From positions 124,001 through 188,000 of the IMG/VR virus record IMGVR_UViG_3300041402_000314: a stretch of 64,000 nucleotides of DNA; one strand, given 5' to 3'. A model generated the notes under the pieces. The model ran no database searches. It was not told the origin of the DNA and worked only from the letters and a program-made list of their open reading frames with translations. The first letter of the stretch is position 1; each line of letters starts with the position of its first letter. The translations under genes and the position numbers were made by a program. This document shows, piece after piece, positions 5,417 to 50,090 of the stretch.

Positions 5417-6643
5417 ATGGCTGGTAGAGATGTTAGTAATACTAACTTAGGTAAATTAGAAGCTTTGTATGATATCGTTGATGTTTTATCTGGAACTTCG
5501 GGAGAAGGAGAACAAAAAACGGCTTTCGATGAATTATTGATAGCAGAACTTACTCCAGTTATTCAATTACAATTTCCTTATAATATAAATACGGATTTAT
5601 TATCTATAACTACTTCCGTTTCTGGTGATGTCACTCAATCAAATACTAAAGCAGTTATTGAAACTGGAGCTAGTAGTAGCAGTTCAGCATCTATACAAAG
5701 TAAGAAAGTATTGAAATATAATCCCGGTCAAGGTTCCTTAGTTAGATTTACCGCGTTATTTACTGCTGGAGTAAATGGGTCATCTCAGTTAATTGGAGTC
5801 GGAGATGATCAAGATGGATTTTTTGTAGGTTGTGATGACACTACTTTTGGTATTTTAAGAAGACAGAATGGTGTTGATACATGGACATATCAAACTAATT
5901 GGAACGGTGATAAAGCAGATAATAGTGGAACTTTACCTGTTATAGATTTCACTAAAGGTAATGTATTTCAAATTCGATATCAATGGTTAGGTTATGGTGC
6001 TATAAAATTTTATATAGAAAACCCAAGCAATGGTAAATTAATATTAGTACATACAATTCCATATGCTAATGCTTATACGATAGCATCTATTTACAATCCT
6101 ACTTTACCATTATTTGTAAAGGCAGAAAATACTACAAATGATACTAATATTAAAATAGAAACATCTTCTTTAGCTGGATTCGTTGAGGGCAAATTAGAAA
6201 CTAAATCTTCTTCATTAGTGAAAGCTAAAGGTAATTTAAAAGCTGCAATAACTACAGAAACTAATCTTATAACGATTAGAAACAAAAGTACGTATCAATC
6301 AAAAACTAACAGAGTTAGAGTGAAGCCCATATTTATTTCATTGGCGAACGAAGGAACTAAAACTGTCAAGTACAGGTACTTGTTAAATGCTACTATCGGT
6401 GGTACGCCATCATTTAATAGTATAGATGTGAATAATTCAGTTATTGAATATGATATTGCTGGAACAACAATAACTGATGAAGGAAGTGAACTTTTTACTG
6501 TAGATTTAGCAAAATCTGATTCCGACCGAATAACTTTACCATTTGATATTCCTTTGAATCCCGGAGATTCATTAACTATTACAGCGGAGTCATCTTCATC
6601 TACAGATGCAGAAGCTTCAGTTACATGGGAAGAATTATTTTAA
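5417..6643 (+). CDS. Probable beta-rich virion structural protein
   Basis: Late promoter; Ser/Thr/Gly-rich beta-strand pattern; no family assignment possible by eye. Confidence 0.55.
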   Translation: MAGRDVSNTNLGKLEALYDIVDVLSGTSGEGEQKTAFDELLIAELTPVIQLQFPYNINTDLLSITTSVSGDVTQSNTKAVIETGASSSSSASIQSKKVLKYNPGQGSLVRFTALFTAGVNGSSQLIGVGDDQDGFFVGCDDTTFGILRRQNGVDTWTYQTNWNGDKADNSGTLPVIDFTKGNVFQIRYQWLGYGAIKFYIENPSNGKLILVHTIPYANAYTIASIYNPTLPLFVKAENTTNDTNIKIETSSLAGFVEGKLETKSSSLVKAKGNLKAAITTETNLITIRNKSTYQSKTNRVRVKPIFISLANEGTKTVKYRYLLNATIGGTPSFNSIDVNNSVIEYDIAGTTITDEGSELFTVDLAKSDSDRITLPFDIPLNPGDSLTITAESSSSTDAEASVTWEELF

Positions 6644-6654
6644 AGGGAACTAAC

Positions 6655-6849
6655 ATGGATTCAGATATATTGGTTGATATGAGATCAAAGAAAATATTAG
6701 GCGGTTCCGCTTTCATACATAAGATAAAAGGTTATGTGATATGGAAAGTCTTGTCGATAGATAAGGCAGGAAAGATAAAAGATAATTTTACCTTCAAAGA
6801 CGAGATATTAGCCACTGAGAAATTCGAAGATATCACGGAGATCGATTAA
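6655..6849 (+). CDS. Hypothetical protein
   Basis: MDSDILVDMRSKK..., RBS AAGGG; track start 6625 overlaps upstream gene. Confidence 0.45.
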   Translation: MDSDILVDMRSKKILGGSAFIHKIKGYVIWKVLSIDKAGKIKDNFTFKDEILATEKFEDITEID

Positions 6850-8030
6850 TGTTTTCCAAATACTGCCTCTTTGGGTGTCCAGCCGCAACGTAATCTGGAA
6901 GCTATGACACCATACTTATTTCTGGATATTTCAGCCCATTCTTTCATGGATTTTTTATCACCATCTATAGTTAGACCTTTCTTTTTTCCATAGACTGCCT
7001 TTTCGGGAGACCAACCTATATTCATTCTCCCTCTAATTATTTCTGGGGTATTCCCAGAAAGTTCAGCCCATTCTTTTATAGTTTTAGTTTCTCCGTTGAA
7101 TGTTAAATATTTCTTAGTTTTATGTTCGGAAAATACAGCTTCCTTTTCAGACCATCCATTTCCCAATCTGGTATGTATAGTATTGAAATTAGTTCCAGAT
7201 TTATTAGACCATTCCTTTACGGTTTTAGTTACGCCATTTATTGTTAAATATTTCTTATTTTTATGTTCTGAAAATACTGCTTCTTTAGGAGACCAACCAG
7301 CTTTTAGCCTCCCTCTTATAGTATTAAAGTCTATACCAGAAAGTTCAGACCATTTTTTCACAGATTTAGTTTCACCCTCTACAGTCAGATACAATGTTAT
7401 TTTACATTCATCTCTTATTATTGTCTCGATTCGTTTGCGAATTTGTTCAGGTGATTATTTCTTACCAAATTGGGAATGTTTTTCACCTCTTTGGGAGTCA
7501 CTAATTAATTTCCTAGTTTCTTCAGAATGTGTTTTACCATACATACCATTTTTCTCACCAGATGACATTTCTGAATATCTCAGTCTTTCTTCTGGATTTT
7601 CAAAACGTCTGATTTGTGCCTTTCGTAATTTCTCTATGGTTTCTTCAGTCGGTATATACCCACAACATCCTTCACCTCCATTAGTCTTATTGAGCAAAGG
7701 CCCTAATCCCAAATCTACTCTACCTACCACTCTTATTATATATCTTTCTTTAGCAAAGGCTTCCTGTTCTGTTACATTTTCTAATATCTTGATTATTTTA
7801 GGCTCATAACCATCTTCTATTATTTCTCTAAGTAGATTTAATTTATCCGAATCAATATCTGTATTAATAGCATCTTTGGCATGTACTTCACATCTATCAT
7901 CAAGACCTTTACCTCCATAGATAGGAAGATAGTCTAGTGTTAATTTACCGCCATCATAAATGAAAGTACCTGTATGTCTTGGGTCTAATATTATATATGT
8001 ATAGAAAATAGGGTCTTCGGGATTGGTCAT
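6846..8030 (-). pseudogene. Free-standing GIY-YIG-like homing endonuclease (NUMOD3 plus 4 tandem DNA-binding repeats) split by one in-frame TAA
   Basis: 8030-7455: YTY..LDPR...IYGGKG..DR..H...E..L.N...GGEG and GKTHSEETRK; after TAA 7457-7455 the same frame continues SPEQIRKRIET... into 7394-6846 with four LTxxGETKT.KEW.E.SG....TI..R...GWS..EAV repeats. Confidence 0.75.
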
Positions 8031-8056
8031 GATATTGCTCCTTATATAAATAGATG

Positions 8057-8124
8057 TGAGAGGGACAGCAAGTAGATTGCTCCACTTGTTGCTAGGTAGT
8101 TCGTGCTATCTAGCTAACCTCTTA
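8057..8124 (+). ncRNA. Putative three-way-junction structured RNA, copy 1
   Basis: P1 TGAGAGG/CCTCTTA, GA, P2 CAGCAAGT/ACTTGTTG with GCTCC in loop, P3 CTAGGTAG/CTATCTAG, CTAA; starts 5 nt after TATAAATA 8045-8052. Confidence 0.55.
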
Positions 8125-8131
8125 TTATAAC

Positions 8132-8139
8132 TATTTATA
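8132..8139 (-). promoter_or_regulatory. T4-type late promoter for the GIY-YIG-like gene
   Basis: TATTTATA on + = TATAAATA on -. Confidence 0.55.
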
Positions 8140-8162: not shown

Positions 8163-8170
8163 TATAAATA
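8163..8170 (+). promoter_or_regulatory. T4-type late promoter
   Basis: TATAAATA upstream of gp14. Confidence 0.7.
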
Positions 8171-8196
8171 GTTAAAACAATATTAAAAGGAATATT

Positions 8197-35663: not shown

Positions 35664-37304
35664 ATGCCACAATTACTTTCACCCGATGTAAACATAGTCG
35701 AAAGAGATTTAAGTGCTTTTGTTGCGTCTGTAGCTACCAGTATAGCAGTATATGTAGGTAGGGCTACTAAAGGACCAGTATGGGAAAAGACACAGGTTTC
35801 CAATGAAAGACAGTTTGCAGAACTATTCGGTGAGCCGACATCAACTGATTATGAGGATTTTTTTACCGCTGCTGGATTCCTTCAGTATGGTAACACCTTG
35901 TATTACACAAGAGTCGTTGATACCGCAACTGCTAAAAACTCACAATTAAACGTAAGCACTGGTGCTGCTCCTTCTGCTGGAGATGGTGATTATGTTGCTG
36001 ATTGGGAAGAATATACGCCCTCATTCGGTGCTGAGAAAATGCAAGTGTACGCTAAGTATCCGGGAGCTTACGGTGACACTGATTTCAAAGTAGCAATGAT
36101 CAGTAATACAGATTGGGCTACTATAGGTACATCACCTACTCTCTCTGGTTATGAGTCTGTCATCGATCAAGGTCCAGAGCTTGCTACAGAATTCCTTGTT
36201 ATCGTATCTGCTCTACAGTCAGATGGAGAATATGAAATCCTCGAAACTTACCTTGTTTCTGATACCGAAGGAACTAAGGACTTCGAAGGCAATAACATGT
36301 ATGTCGATGAGGTCATTAATAAAGGCTCAAACTACATACTAGTATTCAATAATACTGGCGTGTCCGCTGAACTACAGTCGTTTGCTGAGACTGCTCCTGC
36401 TAATGGTGCGGACGGTGATATAAATGAAGCCGATATCGTACTAGGATATGATCTTTATGATAACCCTGAAGAAATCGAAATCAACTATGTGATAGGTGGT
36501 AGTCATACTACTGTTGCAACTGCAAATGCTATTCTTGCGCTATGTGTTGCAAGAGCAGACTGTTTTGCGATTCTCGATGTTCCTAAATCTGATGTTGTAG
36601 GTATTGCTAGTATTTCAACCGCTGTAAGTAATGTAGTAGACTATAGAAAGACGGAACTTAATGCTAATACTTCTTACGGTGCGCTATATGCTAACTGGCT
36701 TTATATCTATGATAAATATAACGATACAAACAGATGGGTTCCGAGTGGTGGTCATGTAGCTGGTATCTATGCCCATACTGCTAATGTAGAGGATGCATGG
36801 TTCGCTCCTGCTGGACTTAATAGAGGTATTTTGAGTAACGTTATTAAGCTGGCTATGAATCCGGGTAAATCTTATAGAGATACGCTATATAAGAATCAAA
36901 TCAATCCATTGGTTAGTTTCCCCGGTCAAGGAATTAGTGTTTGGGGTCAAAAGACTCTCCAGACTAAACCTTCTGCATTCGATAGAGTTAATGTTAGATT
37001 ACTCTTTCTATACATGGAAAAAGCTATTGGTAGAAGTGCAAAATATGTTGTTTTCGAACAAAATGATCAGCTTACTAGAAGTATCTTTAAGAACCAGATT
37101 GAACCATTCCTTGATGATATCAAAGGCAGAAGAGGTATATATGACTTCTTAGTATTGGTAGATGAATCCGTTAATACGCCCGAAAGAGTGGACAGAAATG
37201 AGTTTCATTGTGAAATTTTCGTAAAACCAGTTAAGAGTGCAGAATTTATCGTACTTCGTTTCACTGCGACAAAAACTGGTGTAGACTTTAGTGAGTTAAC
37301 TTAA
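35664..37304 (+). CDS. gp18: Tail sheath protein, T4 gp18-like
   Basis: SPDVNIVERDLS, GP, WFAPAGLNRG, RD.LY...INP, WGQKT, FDR.NVR.LF, FE.ND..TR, IFVKP.KS.EFI.L.F. Confidence 0.95.
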   Translation: MPQLLSPDVNIVERDLSAFVASVATSIAVYVGRATKGPVWEKTQVSNERQFAELFGEPTSTDYEDFFTAAGFLQYGNTLYYTRVVDTATAKNSQLNVSTGAAPSAGDGDYVADWEEYTPSFGAEKMQVYAKYPGAYGDTDFKVAMISNTDWATIGTSPTLSGYESVIDQGPELATEFLVIVSALQSDGEYEILETYLVSDTEGTKDFEGNNMYVDEVINKGSNYILVFNNTGVSAELQSFAETAPANGADGDINEADIVLGYDLYDNPEEIEINYVIGGSHTTVATANAILALCVARADCFAILDVPKSDVVGIASISTAVSNVVDYRKTELNANTSYGALYANWLYIYDKYNDTNRWVPSGGHVAGIYAHTANVEDAWFAPAGLNRGILSNVIKLAMNPGKSYRDTLYKNQINPLVSFPGQGISVWGQKTLQTKPSAFDRVNVRLLFLYMEKAIGRSAKYVVFEQNDQLTRSIFKNQIEPFLDDIKGRRGIYDFLVLVDESVNTPERVDRNEFHCEIFVKPVKSAEFIVLRFTATKTGVDFSELT

Positions 37305-37319
37305 GATATAAATATTTAA

Positions 37320-37377
37320 GGAAGGACAGTGGGTAGCTCCCATTGATGATGTGTTTACTCCATATCATCTTACTTCC
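37320..37377 (+). ncRNA. Putative three-way-junction structured RNA, copy 2 (5' leader of nuclease gene)
   Basis: P1 GGAAG/CTTCC, GA, P2 CAGTGGG/CCCATTG with GCTCC, P3 ATGATGTG/CATATCAT, CTTA; starts 6 nt after TATAAATA 37307-37314. Confidence 0.55.
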
Positions 37378-37407
37378 ATACATAACTTAAATAATGGAGT
37401 AAACATT

Positions 37408-38388
37408 ATGAAAGAAAAAATAATTTGTCATATTTGCTATAAAGAATTTAATTCTATTCTTAGTTTATCGAGACACATCAAACCCGCTCACAGTATATCA
37501 AGTAAAGATTATTTTGATAAATTTATCAAAAAAGAGAAAAGTGGTTTATGCTCAGTATGTTCAAATCCTACTCGTTTTGTTAATTTCGGTATAGGATACA
37601 AAAAATATTGTTCAAATAGCTGTCATAACAGAGATAAGAAAGCTCTGACAGATATAAGAGATGCACTTATCTATGAAGAAAAAATAAAAACCGAAACGAT
37701 AGTTTTTGACTGTGAGATTTGCGGATATAAAATTTTTAATAACTATCATGGTATTGGTTCTCATCTAAAACATAAACATAACTTATCTATACAAGAATAT
37801 TATGATAAATATTATTTAGAAAATATATTAGATAAGAAATGTAACATTTGTGACCGAGAAACATCATTTCGCTCTTTAGAAGTTGGGTATACTAAATATT
37901 GCTCTATTTCTTGTAGTAACAAGGAAGAGGTTAACATATTAGCAAGAAAGAAAGGTATAAATAAGAAAGAAGTAAAGGAGAGACAGTCTCGTAATTTATC
38001 ACAGAGAATTTTAAATGGGACTTTTAATCCATTCGCTAAAAAATTTAAAACTGGATATTTTTATTCTGAGAAAAATCAGAAAGATTTGTATTACCGTTCA
38101 TCATATGAATTAAAAGCATATCAAATGTTGGAACAGATGTCTTTAGTTAACATATATGAAACTGAACCATTTAGAATACCTTATAAGGATATGAAAGGTG
38201 TAACTAGAAATTATATACCTGATATTTTGATTATCTATGAAGATGGTATGAGAGAATTGGTAGAAGTGAAACCAGAAAATTTATTAAAGGATGAAACCAT
38301 TCAAATAAAAACAGAATCTGCCAAACAGTATTGTAAAGCCAATAACATGTCCTTTAATATATGGACTGAAAAATTCCTAGAACTATAA
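37408..38388 (+). CDS. Free-standing putative homing endonuclease: repeated Zn fingers plus TnsA-like PD-(D/E)xK domain
   Basis: CxxC...HxxxxH and CxxC...YC repeats; YRSSYE...EPF.IPY....Y.PD.......LVEVKP; start revised to ATG 37408 after GGAG. Confidence 0.75.
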   Translation: MKEKIICHICYKEFNSILSLSRHIKPAHSISSKDYFDKFIKKEKSGLCSVCSNPTRFVNFGIGYKKYCSNSCHNRDKKALTDIRDALIYEEKIKTETIVFDCEICGYKIFNNYHGIGSHLKHKHNLSIQEYYDKYYLENILDKKCNICDRETSFRSLEVGYTKYCSISCSNKEEVNILARKKGINKKEVKERQSRNLSQRILNGTFNPFAKKFKTGYFYSEKNQKDLYYRSSYELKAYQMLEQMSLVNIYETEPFRIPYKDMKGVTRNYIPDILIIYEDGMRELVEVKPENLLKDETIQIKTESAKQYCKANNMSFNIWTEKFLEL

Positions 38389-43004: not shown

Positions 43005-43340
43005 ATGGCTAAAAAAATAAGAAGCGGTACAAAGTCAATTATAAATATTTTAGGGTATACGGAATATAACGGCGAGACCATTACTAATATATTCCAAAAA
43101 TTTAGCATCAAGCAAAGTAATTTACTTAACGTTAACTTCTATGATGAATATATCGTACAAAGTAGCGATAGATGGGACAGTATTTCATATAAGTTTTACA
43201 ATACTACAACTCTTTGGTGGATGATAGCTAATTATAATGGAATATTTGACCCTTTCGAAGAATTGGTAGTAGGTGAAAAAATTAAAATAGTTAAACCAGA
43301 ATTGGTATCAAGTCTAATTCTAGGATTGAGAAATAGATAA
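43005..43340 (+). CDS. gp53: Baseplate wedge protein, gp53-like (LysM-type)
   Basis: EY.VQ..DRWD.ISY.FY....LWW.I...N.I.DP. Confidence 0.8.
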   Translation: MAKKIRSGTKSIINILGYTEYNGETITNIFQKFSIKQSNLLNVNFYDEYIVQSSDRWDSISYKFYNTTTLWWMIANYNGIFDPFEELVVGEKIKIVKPELVSSLILGLRNR

Positions 43341-48076: not shown

Positions 48077-48086
48077 TAAATAAGAC

Positions 48087-50090
48087 ATGGCATTTAATCC
48101 TATTACAACAGGTTCACCTTTTGATGGTTTTTTCGAAGAACATCTTCCCAAATTCTTCTTCGAAAAATTCAAAGGAAATGACTTAATTAGAATTCAGAGT
48201 ATCCTATCTAATTTGGAAATAGCTTTCGATAATATTTATCAGAAAACAAAAGAATTTCCAGATAATTTGGATATTGATATTGCTGAAGTAAAATATCTTT
48301 TTCATCTAGGGTCATTATTGGGCATTCCCGATATTGAGGATTTAAGTAAATATTTCGATAGTGATGGAAATTTAGATACCGCATTAATAAATCAGAGTCA
48401 GTATGATAAGTTATATGTCCATCAAAGAACTCAAATTGCGGATGCTGTTGCTGGCTATCTATTAAAAGGAACTAAAGAAAGCATCATAAGATTATTACAA
48501 AGTTATGGAATAATTACAGATGTTAGGGAGCTATGGGCGGAGAATATCATAGAAGGACCGTATTTTGAATATGAAAATTCATTAATAACTAGATATGGAA
48601 GTGCTATAACTGGTTCAGTATCGGGAGACGTATATACTGAAGACGAGCCTATTGATATAATTTCGGAGATTTCGGCTACGGTTCCATCGATAACAGGAAT
48701 AGGCGATATTGAACAATTCGAAATGAATAACTATGGGTACAAATATTTATTGGATGATAATAATACGCTTTATTATAAAACATCTACAGTAGCCGAAATA
48801 TCTGGAAGTACAGAAGACACATGGTACGAATATGATTCATCCACATTGACTATAAGTGGGGATATTATAGAGTTTAAATTATTAAACGATAAAATTTATC
48901 TAAGAACAGATGCCTATGATCTAGCGGTTTTAGATTATCATCTTGACGATCTAACCATTACCCCAGATTTCAGCATTGATAATAATGATCTAATATTCTT
49001 TGATTTCATCGAAAATGGAACATATATCTTCTTGGATAGGGACTCTAAACTAGAAGTAAGAAACGTTGATGATTATCAGCGTCTAGCTAATAGTATTGAT
49101 AAGCCTGTAAGCAATACCGAAGATATCAATCAAATATTATTAAAAGAAGATAAAGAGTATCTGATTATAAATACTAACAAGAAAGGATATATTTTAAACG
49201 TTGATACGAACGGAGGAACTTATAATCTAAATTCTCCTGCTACCGTATATGATTTATTAATAGACTCGGACGAAATCAACTATAAAGGTTTTCGTATTGA
49301 AGACAACTCTTTCACTATTTTAAAATACAATACTTCTGATATTGCTTTAACTGGTAGTTATTTTAGTTTTGATGACGATGATAATATGTCGATCACAACC
49401 CCAACCGTTTCAATTGCTTTCACTGAAGTAAATGATTACCACCAACATTTGGAACGTGTTTTGGTATTAGGTGACACTAATTTTGGAATTTTTAACTTAA
49501 AAGATAAATCTATAGTTGTTTATAATTATGTGACAACAGGCTACGATTATAAAAAAGTTTTTGATTTGGATTTGTTTTACTTCTTAAGATTTAGTGGGTC
49601 TGATTTAGACCTAACAAAAATAACTGGATGGAACTCTTTTAAAGAATTTCTATACAAAACACATTATTTTGATTTAACCGTTGGTGAAGATATTTTAGAT
49701 GGAGTTATCGATTTTACCATTACTACCTCTTCATTAAGAACATTTGTAGAAGATTTACTATTATTAGTTAAACCCATTCATACTGAATTAAGAGCGTTAA
49801 CTACGATATTTGCTAATTATTTAGAAGATAGTATTACTGTTACTAATAATGATTTATTATCGGAAGTTCCTGTCGTTTCGGGCGGCCCTGAATTCTCATT
49901 AATAATGTTAGCGAAATATAATGGTATACATCCTTGGAAACGAACAAATGCACAACCTCTTAAATATAATAACGATGGGATTGGCGGAAATCCGACATTC
50001 AAATATGGTGATACCACCTTCAATTTTGAAATTGATACCGATAATACCGATTTAGATAATTTAGTGTATTATAACACATCTTTACCATAA
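48087..50090 (+). CDS. Baseplate wedge subunit, gp7/P2 gpI-like
   Basis: YL.HLG.LLG, Y.LKGT.ESI..LL...G, VKP.HT; follows gp6. Confidence 0.65.
   Translation: MAFNPITTGSPFDGFFEEHLPKFFFEKFKGNDLIRIQSILSNLEIAFDNIYQKTKEFPDNLDIDIAEVKYLFHLGSLLGIPDIEDLSKYFDSDGNLDTALINQSQYDKLYVHQRTQIADAVAGYLLKGTKESIIRLLQSYGIITDVRELWAENIIEGPYFEYENSLITRYGSAITGSVSGDVYTEDEPIDIISEISATVPSITGIGDIEQFEMNNYGYKYLLDDNNTLYYKTSTVAEISGSTEDTWYEYDSSTLTISGDIIEFKLLNDKIYLRTDAYDLAVLDYHLDDLTITPDFSIDNNDLIFFDFIENGTYIFLDRDSKLEVRNVDDYQRLANSIDKPVSNTEDINQILLKEDKEYLIINTNKKGYILNVDTNGGTYNLNSPATVYDLLIDSDEINYKGFRIEDNSFTILKYNTSDIALTGSYFSFDDDDNMSITTPTVSIAFTEVNDYHQHLERVLVLGDTNFGIFNLKDKSIVVYNYVTTGYDYKKVFDLDLFYFLRFSGSDLDLTKITGWNSFKEFLYKTHYFDLTVGEDILDGVIDFTITTSSLRTFVEDLLLLVKPIHTELRALTTIFANYLEDSITVTNNDLLSEVPVVSGGPEFSLIMLAKYNGIHPWKRTNAQPLKYNNDGIGGNPTFKYGDTTFNFEIDTDNTDLDNLVYYNTSLP

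Follow-up and report, generated by a model that had tools for sequence, protein, structure and literature searches.

Homing endonucleases are everywhere in large phages, yet how a phage tolerates many of them, and how the nucleases avoid damaging their own carrier, is known only for a few T4 cases that rely on unrelated local hairpins. In these T4-family homing-endonuclease genes (HEGs; I-TevI, I-TevII, I-TevIII, segB and Aeh1 mobE), translation is limited by RNA structures at the ribosome-binding site in combination with TATAAATA late promoters, and a further hairpin lies just upstream of the ribosome-binding site of seg43(25) (PMC2988022). We describe a small folded RNA with a three-way junction (3WJ) that sits beside the HEGs of a 204-kb T4-like phage (IMG/VR record IMGVR_UViG_3300041402_000314), of which a 64,000-nucleotide stretch, hereafter the window, was analyzed, and beside the HEGs of related phages. 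As in the T4 cases, an RNA structure is associated with the initiation region of an HEG and with late promoters, and presumably serves to limit or delay translation of a nuclease. However, the T4 structures are simple local hairpins with no homology to one another, in which the Shine-Dalgarno sequence lies in the stem, whereas here a conserved, homologous scaffold is shared by unrelated HEGs, contact would be made by apical loops at long range, and in 10 of 17 copies the RNA is on the opposite strand and can act only in trans. The Shine-Dalgarno sequences were not sequestered in local hairpins: initiation regions of the divergent type folded at only 0 to -4 kcal/mol, and in the copies with a downstream HEG the Shine-Dalgarno sequence was single-stranded or in a loop and was predicted to be contacted by a distant loop.

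Type I toxin-antitoxin antisense RNAs (Sib/Ibs, IstR-1/TisB, Sok/Hok) likewise lie beside or overlap the gene for a harmful protein and pair at or near its translation initiation region, and the Sib RNAs show cognate specificity among several paralogous copies (PMC2943612). The RNA described here shares the adjacent position, the complementarity to the initiation region and the cognate specificity, but its targets are endonucleases of 191-390 aa from mobile elements in a lytic phage rather than small hydrophobic membrane peptides, its specificity determinant is one 6-9-nt loop on a conserved 3WJ, and a cis version also exists. Recognition through complementary apical loops appears comparable to the kissing-loop antisense control of plasmids (CopA/CopT, RNA I/RNA II), and in the divergent copies the two overlapping transcripts would be full antisense partners whose loops could nucleate pairing; here, however, an extra, non-antisense match to the Shine-Dalgarno region is selected, the scaffold is a 3WJ, and the targets are HEGs. 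HEARO/IscB omega-RNA and other nuclease-associated RNAs in Rfam are also structured RNAs consistently found next to a nuclease gene of a mobile element, but they show no sequence or structure match to the present RNA and guide the nuclease to DNA, whereas the loops here match the nuclease's own mRNA and the nucleases are classical protein-guided HEGs. A non-coding RNA linked to an HEG is also known from another T4-like phage, namely the CfrI antisense RNA of cyanophage S-PM2 (Millard et al. 2010, cited in PMC10690425). We regard the 3WJ RNA as a new RNA family that uses a known regulatory principle.

Structure, covariation and distribution of the 3WJ RNA

Copy 1 of the 3WJ RNA occupies 8058-8123 (+) and consists of P1 (8058-8063/8118-8123, with GAGAGG as its first arm), a GA junction (8064-8065), P2 (8066-8073/8084-8091, with a G-U at its third pair and a loop at 8074-8083), P3 (8092-8099/8106-8113), and a CTAA junction (8114-8117). 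Copy 2, at 37320-37377 (+), has the same organization, with P1 at 37320-37324/37373-37377, GA at 37325-37326, P2 at 37327-37333/37339-37345, P3 at 37346-37353/37361-37368 with its loop at 37354-37360, and a CTTA junction at 37369-37372. Every element listed for copy 1 in the original prediction was confirmed. The + strand of copy 1 folded into exactly this 3WJ at -29.4 kcal/mol (z = -4.0), with 0 of 200 shuffles as good, and copy 2 folded at -21.9 kcal/mol (z = -3.2), whereas the reverse strands folded less well. Two covariance models, R1 and R2, scored copy 1 at 86.3 and 84.7 bits and copy 2 at 42 and 59.6 bits, respectively.

A covariance-model search revealed that these are two of seven copies in the phage (E from 1e-14 to 1e-22), and 10 more copies were found in five other metagenomic phage contigs from IMG/VR, metagenome and MAG sequences. 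Pattern hits comprising a lone hairpin without P3 (three cases) or lacking P1 (one case) were rejected as false positives. In a 13-sequence alignment, 95.8% of the cells were paired and 16 of 21 pairs changed on both sides, which no shuffle of 500 reached, and sliding the register reduced pairing to 29-51%. Because MAFFT misaligned copy 2, the model was built from three copies with a hand-checked structure and the remaining copies were aligned to it; this alignment leans toward the structure, although the slid-register control and the independent single-sequence folds guard against this bias. The G-U pairs (19, against 2 A-C) place the structure on the GGACAG strand.

No Rfam 15 family (ribozymes, riboswitches, HEARO, RAGATH motifs, ToxI, phage sRNAs) was matched: the whole window gave 0 hits at gathering score, both copies gave only noise at E > 1, and nothing was found at the 3WJ in seven other copies searched at permissive E-values. 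No tRNA or tmRNA was present in the window. A blastn search of GenBank phages revealed no relative of the element and no close relative of the phage, and the GIY-YIG protein had only 28-44% identical relatives there; a search for related loci with the GIY-YIG alignment confirmed nothing. Relatives of the tail sheath were at most 51% identical, and the model found no copy in their loci or in 41 whole records, so the family is confined to a narrow clade.

The junction is nearly invariant, comprising the G closing P1, GA, the C-G/A-U/G-U base of P2, P3 directly abutting P2 without a linker, and a 3-4 nt junction (CUAA, CUUA, or UUA/UGA in two copies). This is more conservation than a plain antisense RNA needs and hints at an extra partner. 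The core could thus be a binding site for a protein or small ligand, or a self-cleaving ribozyme, with the loop contacts serving as an expression platform. We consider this unlikely, as no Rfam ribozyme or riboswitch model matched the copies searched, the junction has only 5-6 unpaired bases, and no candidate ligand or protein emerges from a gene context consisting only of HEGs from unrelated families. Another unlikely possibility is that the 3WJ is a portable, reprogrammable licensing module captured by different selfish nucleases, in which binding of a phage or host factor, or a metabolite, to the invariant junction would decide whether the loops clamp the ribosome-binding site. Nuclease synthesis would then be released only in a particular state, for example late infection or co-infection with a competitor genome, which would make the RNA a new riboregulator class dedicated to taming mobile nucleases.

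Complementarity between the apical loops and HEG initiation regions

In copy 1, the P2 loop sequence ATTGCTCC (8076-8083) is repeated exactly at 8034-8041, and this repeat is the complement of GGAGCAAT, the Shine-Dalgarno region of the minus-strand GIY-YIG gene, which lies 3 nt before its ATG (8030-8028). The surrounding initiation region is unstructured (-0.9 kcal/mol), as are the other target initiation regions. In copy 2, the nuclease gene lies downstream on the same strand, and the loop matching its Shine-Dalgarno region is the P3 loop rather than the P2 loop: the top of P3 plus its loop (37352-37363) is complementary over 12 nt to 37394-37405, which contains GGAGTAAA. When the whole leader was folded, this target sat in the loop of a small hairpin, so that the contact is a 7-nt loop-loop match.

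In each of the 17 copies, an apical loop is complementary (6-12 nt) to the translation initiation region of the neighboring HEG, and the match covaries. In the 10 copies with a divergent HEG, the P2 loop shares 6-9 nt with the Shine-Dalgarno complement, always centered at position -11, and the 2-5 variable bases next to CUCC in the loop change together with the bases flanking GGAG in the ribosome-binding site, giving 8 distinct sequence pairs. In five of the seven copies with a downstream HEG, a 6-nt P2 loop is exactly complementary to the loop of a small hairpin placed 3-4 nt before the Shine-Dalgarno sequence, an arrangement resembling that of seg43(25); the five loop pairs all differ, and the hairpin stems covary. 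Additionally, the P3 loop matches the start codon (8 nt, in one copy) or the Shine-Dalgarno region (6 nt in one case and 12 nt in copy 2). In the divergent copies, a P3 loop match to the nuclease start region was found only in one copy (5 nt), and is therefore not general. Cognate matches exceeded non-cognate ones (7.3 against 4.25 nt), with 0 of 50,000 permutations of the 16 copies tested as good, and the duplex energy showed the same trend (-15.9 against -11.5 kcal/mol; 0 of 20,000).

These observations support the core of the original prediction, namely an RNA whose loop pairs with the Shine-Dalgarno region of the nuclease to silence it. The best explanation, which we hold with moderate confidence (transcription, pairing and repression are all inferred, and no transcript data exist), is a modular anti-ribosome-binding-site device that travels with free-standing HEGs in a clade of T4-like phages. 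With the HEG on the opposite strand, as in copy 1, the RNA would be made from its own late promoter and its P2 loop would pair in trans with the Shine-Dalgarno region of the HEG mRNA. With the HEG downstream on the same strand, as in copy 2 and six other copies, the 3WJ would be part of the 5' leader, and its loops would dock in cis onto the Shine-Dalgarno region, the start codon, or the loop of the small hairpin. In both cases, the 30S subunit would be kept off, and the potentially genome-damaging nuclease would be made only at a low or delayed level, although the direction of the effect (repression or activation) is not shown. The alternative in the original prediction, that the RNA is bound by the nuclease, is unlikely because unrelated nuclease families share the RNA. 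The 8 Shine-Dalgarno-directed pairs and 5 kissing-loop pairs constitute a natural set of orthogonal loop-target pairs, each copy being retargeted simply by changing a loop, and the scaffold could serve as a compact template for programmable translational repressors.

The element could instead act at the DNA level, with the repeated 6-9-mers as operator or recognition sites for the nuclease or the palindromic segment as a recombination or cruciform site of the mobile cassette. I-TevI represses its own late promoter through an operator that resembles its homing site (PMC2988022), and in the divergent copies the two repeats flank a promoter. This possibility appears very unlikely, as unrelated nuclease families share the same element, the two elements in cis copies are inverted rather than direct and each sits in the loop of a hairpin whose stem covaries, and the strand-asymmetric G-U pairs indicate RNA.

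Predicted late promoters and alternative roles of the transcripts

The T4-type late promoter core TATAAATA occurs at 27 sites in the window against 15.8 expected, 23 of them on the coding strand, and 34 gene-proximal sites gave the extended consensus TATAAATA-N-TTA-(A/T)-AA. In copy 1, the core lies at 8045-8052 (+), exactly 5 nt before P1, so that the predicted transcript would start at the first base of P1. This spacing is kept in 9 copies, even where extra bases are inserted between the promoter and the Shine-Dalgarno complement. The promoter of copy 2 (37307-37314, +) is also 5 nt before P1 and fits the extended consensus well; since it lies upstream of the whole 3WJ, even the late mRNA would be repressed, and how the HEG is ever expressed is not explained by the model. 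The late-promoter reading in the original prediction thus holds, although the + strand core before divergent copies lacks the downstream TTAAAA part of the extended consensus. The terminator scan found no clear terminator at the 3WJ, so a discrete small RNA, as opposed to the 5' leader of a downstream late mRNA, is not established.

A minus-strand late promoter at 8125-8139, comprising TATAAATA (8132-8139) followed by GTTATAA, fits the extended consensus and is present after all 10 divergent copies. It would start the late mRNA of the nuclease at the mirror image of P1, making its leader fully complementary to the 3WJ RNA. This raises the possibility that the functional molecule is the HEG mRNA itself, whose mirror leader also folds (-19 to -35 kcal/mol) and shows a copy of the gene's own Shine-Dalgarno sequence in a loop, which would serve as a ribosome standby or decoy site or as the ribosome-binding site of a short upstream ORF. 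The better fit of the minus-strand promoter favors this view, and a UUG or AUG follows the mirror loop in several copies. However, it seems very unlikely, given that the G-U pairs favor the GGACAG strand, that in the seven cis copies the GGACAG strand is the HEG mRNA strand and the orientation relative to the gene is thus not constant, and that identity of the bases flanking GGAG cannot be explained by pairing with 16S rRNA but needs a copy-specific complementary partner, which only the + strand loop supplies.

Alternatively, the 3WJ and its two facing promoters could be mainly a transcription module, acting as a structured stop or 5'-stabilizer that ends read-through and restarts late transcription on both sides, so that inserting the HEG does not harm the flanking phage genes; the loop matches would then be secondary. 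P1 is followed by U-rich tracts in many copies (up to eight U), both promoters are predicted to start transcripts exactly at the edges of the structure, T4 HEG cassettes are known to carry promoters for downstream genes (PMC2988022), and a solo copy persists next to an 11-codon HEG remnant. [quoted passage not shown]

HEGs associated with the 3WJ RNA

All 17 copies lie next to a free-standing HEG, one of them only a remnant, and these genes belong to unrelated families, including GIY-YIG, HNH, zinc-finger/TnsA-like, zinc-finger/T5orf172 and a zinc-ribbon type. All four LEM-3-type GIY-YIG genes of the genome have a 3WJ, whereas four other nuclease-like genes of the genome lack it. The presumed target of copy 1 is a GIY-YIG + NUMOD3 gene at 7455-8030 (-; 191 codons), supported by Pfam PF22945 (2.6e-9) and PF07460 (1.3e-12), both above cut-off, with three paralogs in the genome, each with its own 3WJ. 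An in-frame TAA (7455-7457) is followed by a continuation of the same reading frame at 6846-7454 (-), which gave no Pfam hit but holds four roughly 45-residue repeats that are probably the DNA-binding part of the nuclease; the gene is therefore split, or decayed. Stop-codon recoding was rejected as a single cause for the split nuclease genes because the two stops differ (TAA and TGA). The presumed cis target of copy 2 is a zinc-finger + TnsA-like (PD-(D/E)xK) endonuclease gene at 37408-38388 (+; PF08722 at 7.2e-16), inserted between the tail sheath and tail tube genes. Other insertion sites likewise lie between core genes, namely beside gp15, between gp53 and gp5, and between gp46- and gp47-like genes.

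A family of three-way-junction elements in a T4-like phage

The 204,149-bp IMG/VR virus record (the window spanning bases 124001-188000) has a G+C content of 35% and comes from a marine-sediment metagenome. It is a T4-like phage: the ORF at 35664-37304 is a tail sheath gene, and the T4 late-promoter core TATAAATA occurs 27 times in the window against 15.8 expected, with 23 of these sites on the + strand. Across the genome, 34 such sites lie within 60 nt upstream of ORFs and share the extended consensus TATAAATA-N-TTA-A-AA, which is longer than the T4 octamer and often runs straight into an AAGGA ribosome-binding site (e.g., window 8163-8178). The phage also carries, outside the window at genome positions 5246-26400, a cluster of 28 predicted tRNA genes, one of which (5928-6001) has the anticodon CUA (an amber-suppressor type, labeled Pyl by ARAGORN), and two HNH genes lie in the same cluster. 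The original prediction had described a three-way-junction (3WJ) RNA beside a GIY-YIG-like nuclease, with a loop complementary to the nuclease ribosome-binding site, and all of its listed features were present at their positions. The + strand from 8053 to 8130 folds into exactly the proposed 3WJ (-29.4 kcal/mol, z = -4.0), and copy 2 behaves likewise (-21.9 kcal/mol, z = -3.2), whereas the reverse complements fold worse. The minus-strand ORF at 7455-8030 is a GIY-YIG + NUMOD3 homing-endonuclease-type gene.

A simple pattern search found two further copies in the genome, and a covariance model built from three copies found seven in total, which was confirmed with a broader model. In genome coordinates, the copies are c1 (132054-132127, +; window 8054-8127), c2 (161315-161380, +; window 37315-37380), and, outside the window, c3 (75213-75286, +), c4 (82735-82809, +), c5 (43251-43324, -), c6 (112128-112201, -), and c7 (48086-48162, -). 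Ten more copies were obtained from pattern scans and from the contexts of homologous nucleases: two in a 128-kb viral contig (G001), three in a 78-kb viral contig (G002), one in a 15-kb metagenome contig, with an identical copy in a second contig (M1), three next to homologs of the c5 nuclease on contigs from another sediment study (E1-E3), and one on a 14-kb contig binned with a MAG (L152). Two further contigs end inside the element. In contrast, no copy was found in 41 other T4-like viral records, including two complete genomes of about 133 kb, or in GenBank phages by blastn, and no Rfam family matched any copy. An unrelated viral contig (IMG/VR contig 3300044300_001711; positions 7900-8110 of locus L018) carries tandem A-rich repeats, each holding a GC-rich hairpin that shares the GGACAGCAAG...CTTGTTG arms but lacks P1 and P3, and is probably a different repeat element picked up by the pattern. 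The 3WJ element is a new RNA family, absent from Rfam and from the literature that could be searched, that uses a known regulatory principle in a new modular form.

Structure, strand, and neighboring nuclease genes

In the 13-sequence alignment to the model, 95.8% of cells form standard pairs and 16 of 21 pairs show changes on both sides, including all 8 pairs of P3. The covariation score was 0.615 against 0.22 for shuffles, with 0 of 500 shuffles as good, and pairing fell to 29-51% when the register was slid by 1-3 columns. Although the alignment was fitted to the model, each copy also folds into the same 3WJ on its own. G-U pairs number 19 on the GGACAG strand, while only 2 positions would be G-U on the other strand; the structured molecule is therefore RNA of the GGACAG strand, although its transcription is inferred. 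This asymmetry argues against two alternative readings, namely a function of the mirror leader of the nuclease mRNA and a DNA operator. The conserved features comprise the G-C pair closing P1, the junction GA, the base of P2 (C-G, A-U, then G-U, the last being U-U in c6 and c7), the absence of a linker between P2 and P3, the start of P3, usually C-U, and a 3-4 nt junction before P1', usually CU(A/U)A. Why the junction is so conserved is not explained by the mechanism proposed below, and a ligand-binding, protein-binding, or ribozyme core was considered as another reading.

Every copy adjoins a free-standing nuclease gene of a kind found in homing cassettes, of which only an 11-codon remnant is left beside c3. 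LEM-3-type GIY-YIG genes neighbor c1, c5, c6, c7, E1-E3, and one G002 copy; classical GIY-YIG genes neighbor one G002 copy and M1; and HNH genes neighbor one G002 copy and L152. The remaining neighbors are a zinc finger with an HNH-like motif, read by eye (one G001 copy), a zinc finger + TnsA-like gene (c2), a zinc finger + T5orf172 gene (c4), and a zinc-ribbon repeat protein (one G001 copy). The insertion points are classic homing-endonuclease gene (HEG) sites between core genes: sheath and tube, beside gp15, between gp53 and gp5, and between gp46- and gp47-like genes. Copy c3 (genome positions 75150-75300; L003 1440-1600) is a solo element in which only a Shine-Dalgarno sequence, an ATG, and 11 codons of the divergent gene remain, overlapping the end of a + strand gene; its + strand promoter box is degenerate (TATAAGTA), but the 3WJ and the opposing promoter are intact, directly in front of a RuvC-like gene. 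The GIY-YIG gene beside copy 1 has an in-frame TAA after codon 191 (window 7455-7457, -), after which the frame runs on into four roughly 45-residue repeats with no Pfam hit (6846-7454, -), and the zinc-finger/T5orf172 gene beside c4 (genome positions about 81800-82700, -) likewise has an in-frame TGA between its domains. Two of the six nuclease genes that have the RNA are therefore split or decaying, or are read through. The converse association does not hold: four other nuclease-like genes of this genome lack the RNA. A short (about 165 aa) TnsA-like PD-(D/E)xK protein gene at genome positions 105938-106397 (-) has no 3WJ and faces a + strand gene that has two tandem late promoters.

Covariation of the loops with the nuclease translation initiation region

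In the divergent arrangement, comprising 10 copies including copy 1, the nuclease gene starts 20-34 nt upstream of the model match on the other strand. The 3' part of the P2 loop repeats the 6-9 bases that lie just before the + strand promoter, which are the complement of the nuclease's Shine-Dalgarno region, and the bases next to the constant CUCC/GGAG differ between copies and change together. The bases shared by the loop and the Shine-Dalgarno complement are ATTGCTCC in c1, GGCTCC in c3, ATAGCTCC in c4, ATAGCTCCT in c7, CACTCC in c5, CTTACTCC in c6, ACTTACTCC in E2, ATACACTC in the G001 copy, ATGACTCC in E1, and AATTCTCCA in E3. The target begins at -11 relative to the start codon in nine of these copies and at -12 in c7.

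In the same-strand arrangement, comprising 7 copies including copy 2, five copies have a 6-nt P2 loop exactly complementary to the loop of a small hairpin that ends 3-4 nt before the Shine-Dalgarno sequence. The five loop pairs all differ (GUGGUG/CACCAC, CGCUAA/UUAGCG, UUCCCG/CGGGAA, UUGACG/CGUCAA, and CUGGUA/UACCAG), and the hairpin stems themselves covary. In several of these copies, the P3 loop matches a second part of the same initiation region: the start codon over 8 nt in M1, the Shine-Dalgarno sequence over 6 nt in L152, and UGGAA at the start codon in two G002 copies. The P3 loops of the cis-type copies (loci L142, L143, L122, and L152) share UUCC(A) or CUCCUA, which are complementary to UGGAA at the start codon or to the Shine-Dalgarno sequence of the downstream nuclease gene, and together with the P2 kissing loop this suggests a two-point clamp, in which the 3WJ would hold the ribosome-binding site from both sides. 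In copy 2, the top of P3 and its loop are complementary over 12 nt to the Shine-Dalgarno region, which lies in the loop of a small hairpin when the whole leader is folded, and in the second G001 copy a 7-nt stretch of the P3 loop matches the Shine-Dalgarno region.

The longest loop-to-target complement averaged 7.3 nt for cognate pairs against 4.25 nt for non-cognate pairs, with none of 50,000 permutations doing as well, and duplex energies averaged -15.9 against -11.5 kcal/mol, with 0 of 20,000 permutations as good. The nuclease paralogs are only 35-59% identical; the cassettes are therefore old, and the matches have been maintained by selection rather than by recent copying. We propose a conserved scaffold that presents copy-specific loops to the initiation region of the adjacent nuclease mRNA, in trans for divergent genes and in cis for downstream genes, which would block 30S binding and keep nuclease synthesis low or delayed. 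Transcription, physical pairing, and the direction of the effect are inferred, and how the copy-2 nuclease is ever translated is unexplained if even its late mRNA carries the 3WJ. The original prediction of a late small RNA silencing the nuclease is supported in its core, with the corrections that copy 2 would work in cis through its P3 loop and that a small RNA is not established. None of the alternatives, whether a mirror-leader function, a DNA operator, a ligand-binding, protein-binding, or ribozyme core, or a transcriptional insulator and promoter cassette, explains the loop-target covariation across unrelated nuclease families and across both orientations. The proposal extends a principle already established for T4-family HEGs, in which local hairpins sequester the ribosome-binding site and late promoters set the timing (PMC2988022), and it also parallels cognate-specific, multi-copy type I antitoxin RNAs (PMC2943612).

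Transcription signals flanking the element

In nine copies, a perfect TATAAATA lies exactly 5 nt before the first base of P1, and a tenth copy has one mismatch. The spacing to P1 is kept even where 11 extra bases separate the promoter from the Shine-Dalgarno complement, as in c7 and E1, and with T4-type late initiation the RNA would begin at P1. A terminator scan called none after the 3WJ, although U-rich tracts follow P1, and the RNA may be either a discrete species of about 70 nt or the leader of the next late mRNA. After every divergent copy, there is a minus-strand late promoter that fits this phage's extended consensus and would start the nuclease's late mRNA at the mirror image of P1; the two transcripts would therefore be complementary over the whole 3WJ. 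However, the match between the loop and the Shine-Dalgarno region lies outside the antisense overlap and cannot be a by-product of it. The mirror leader also folds, whereas the Shine-Dalgarno region beyond it is unstructured. In c6 (genome positions 112128-112201) and c7 (48086-48162), the replacement of the otherwise invariant G-U in P2 by U-U creates, on the opposite strand, an AUG about 12 nt after the GGAG of the mirror loop, which is in frame with the nuclease ORF in c6 and opens a 10-codon ORF ending at the nuclease's Shine-Dalgarno sequence in c7.
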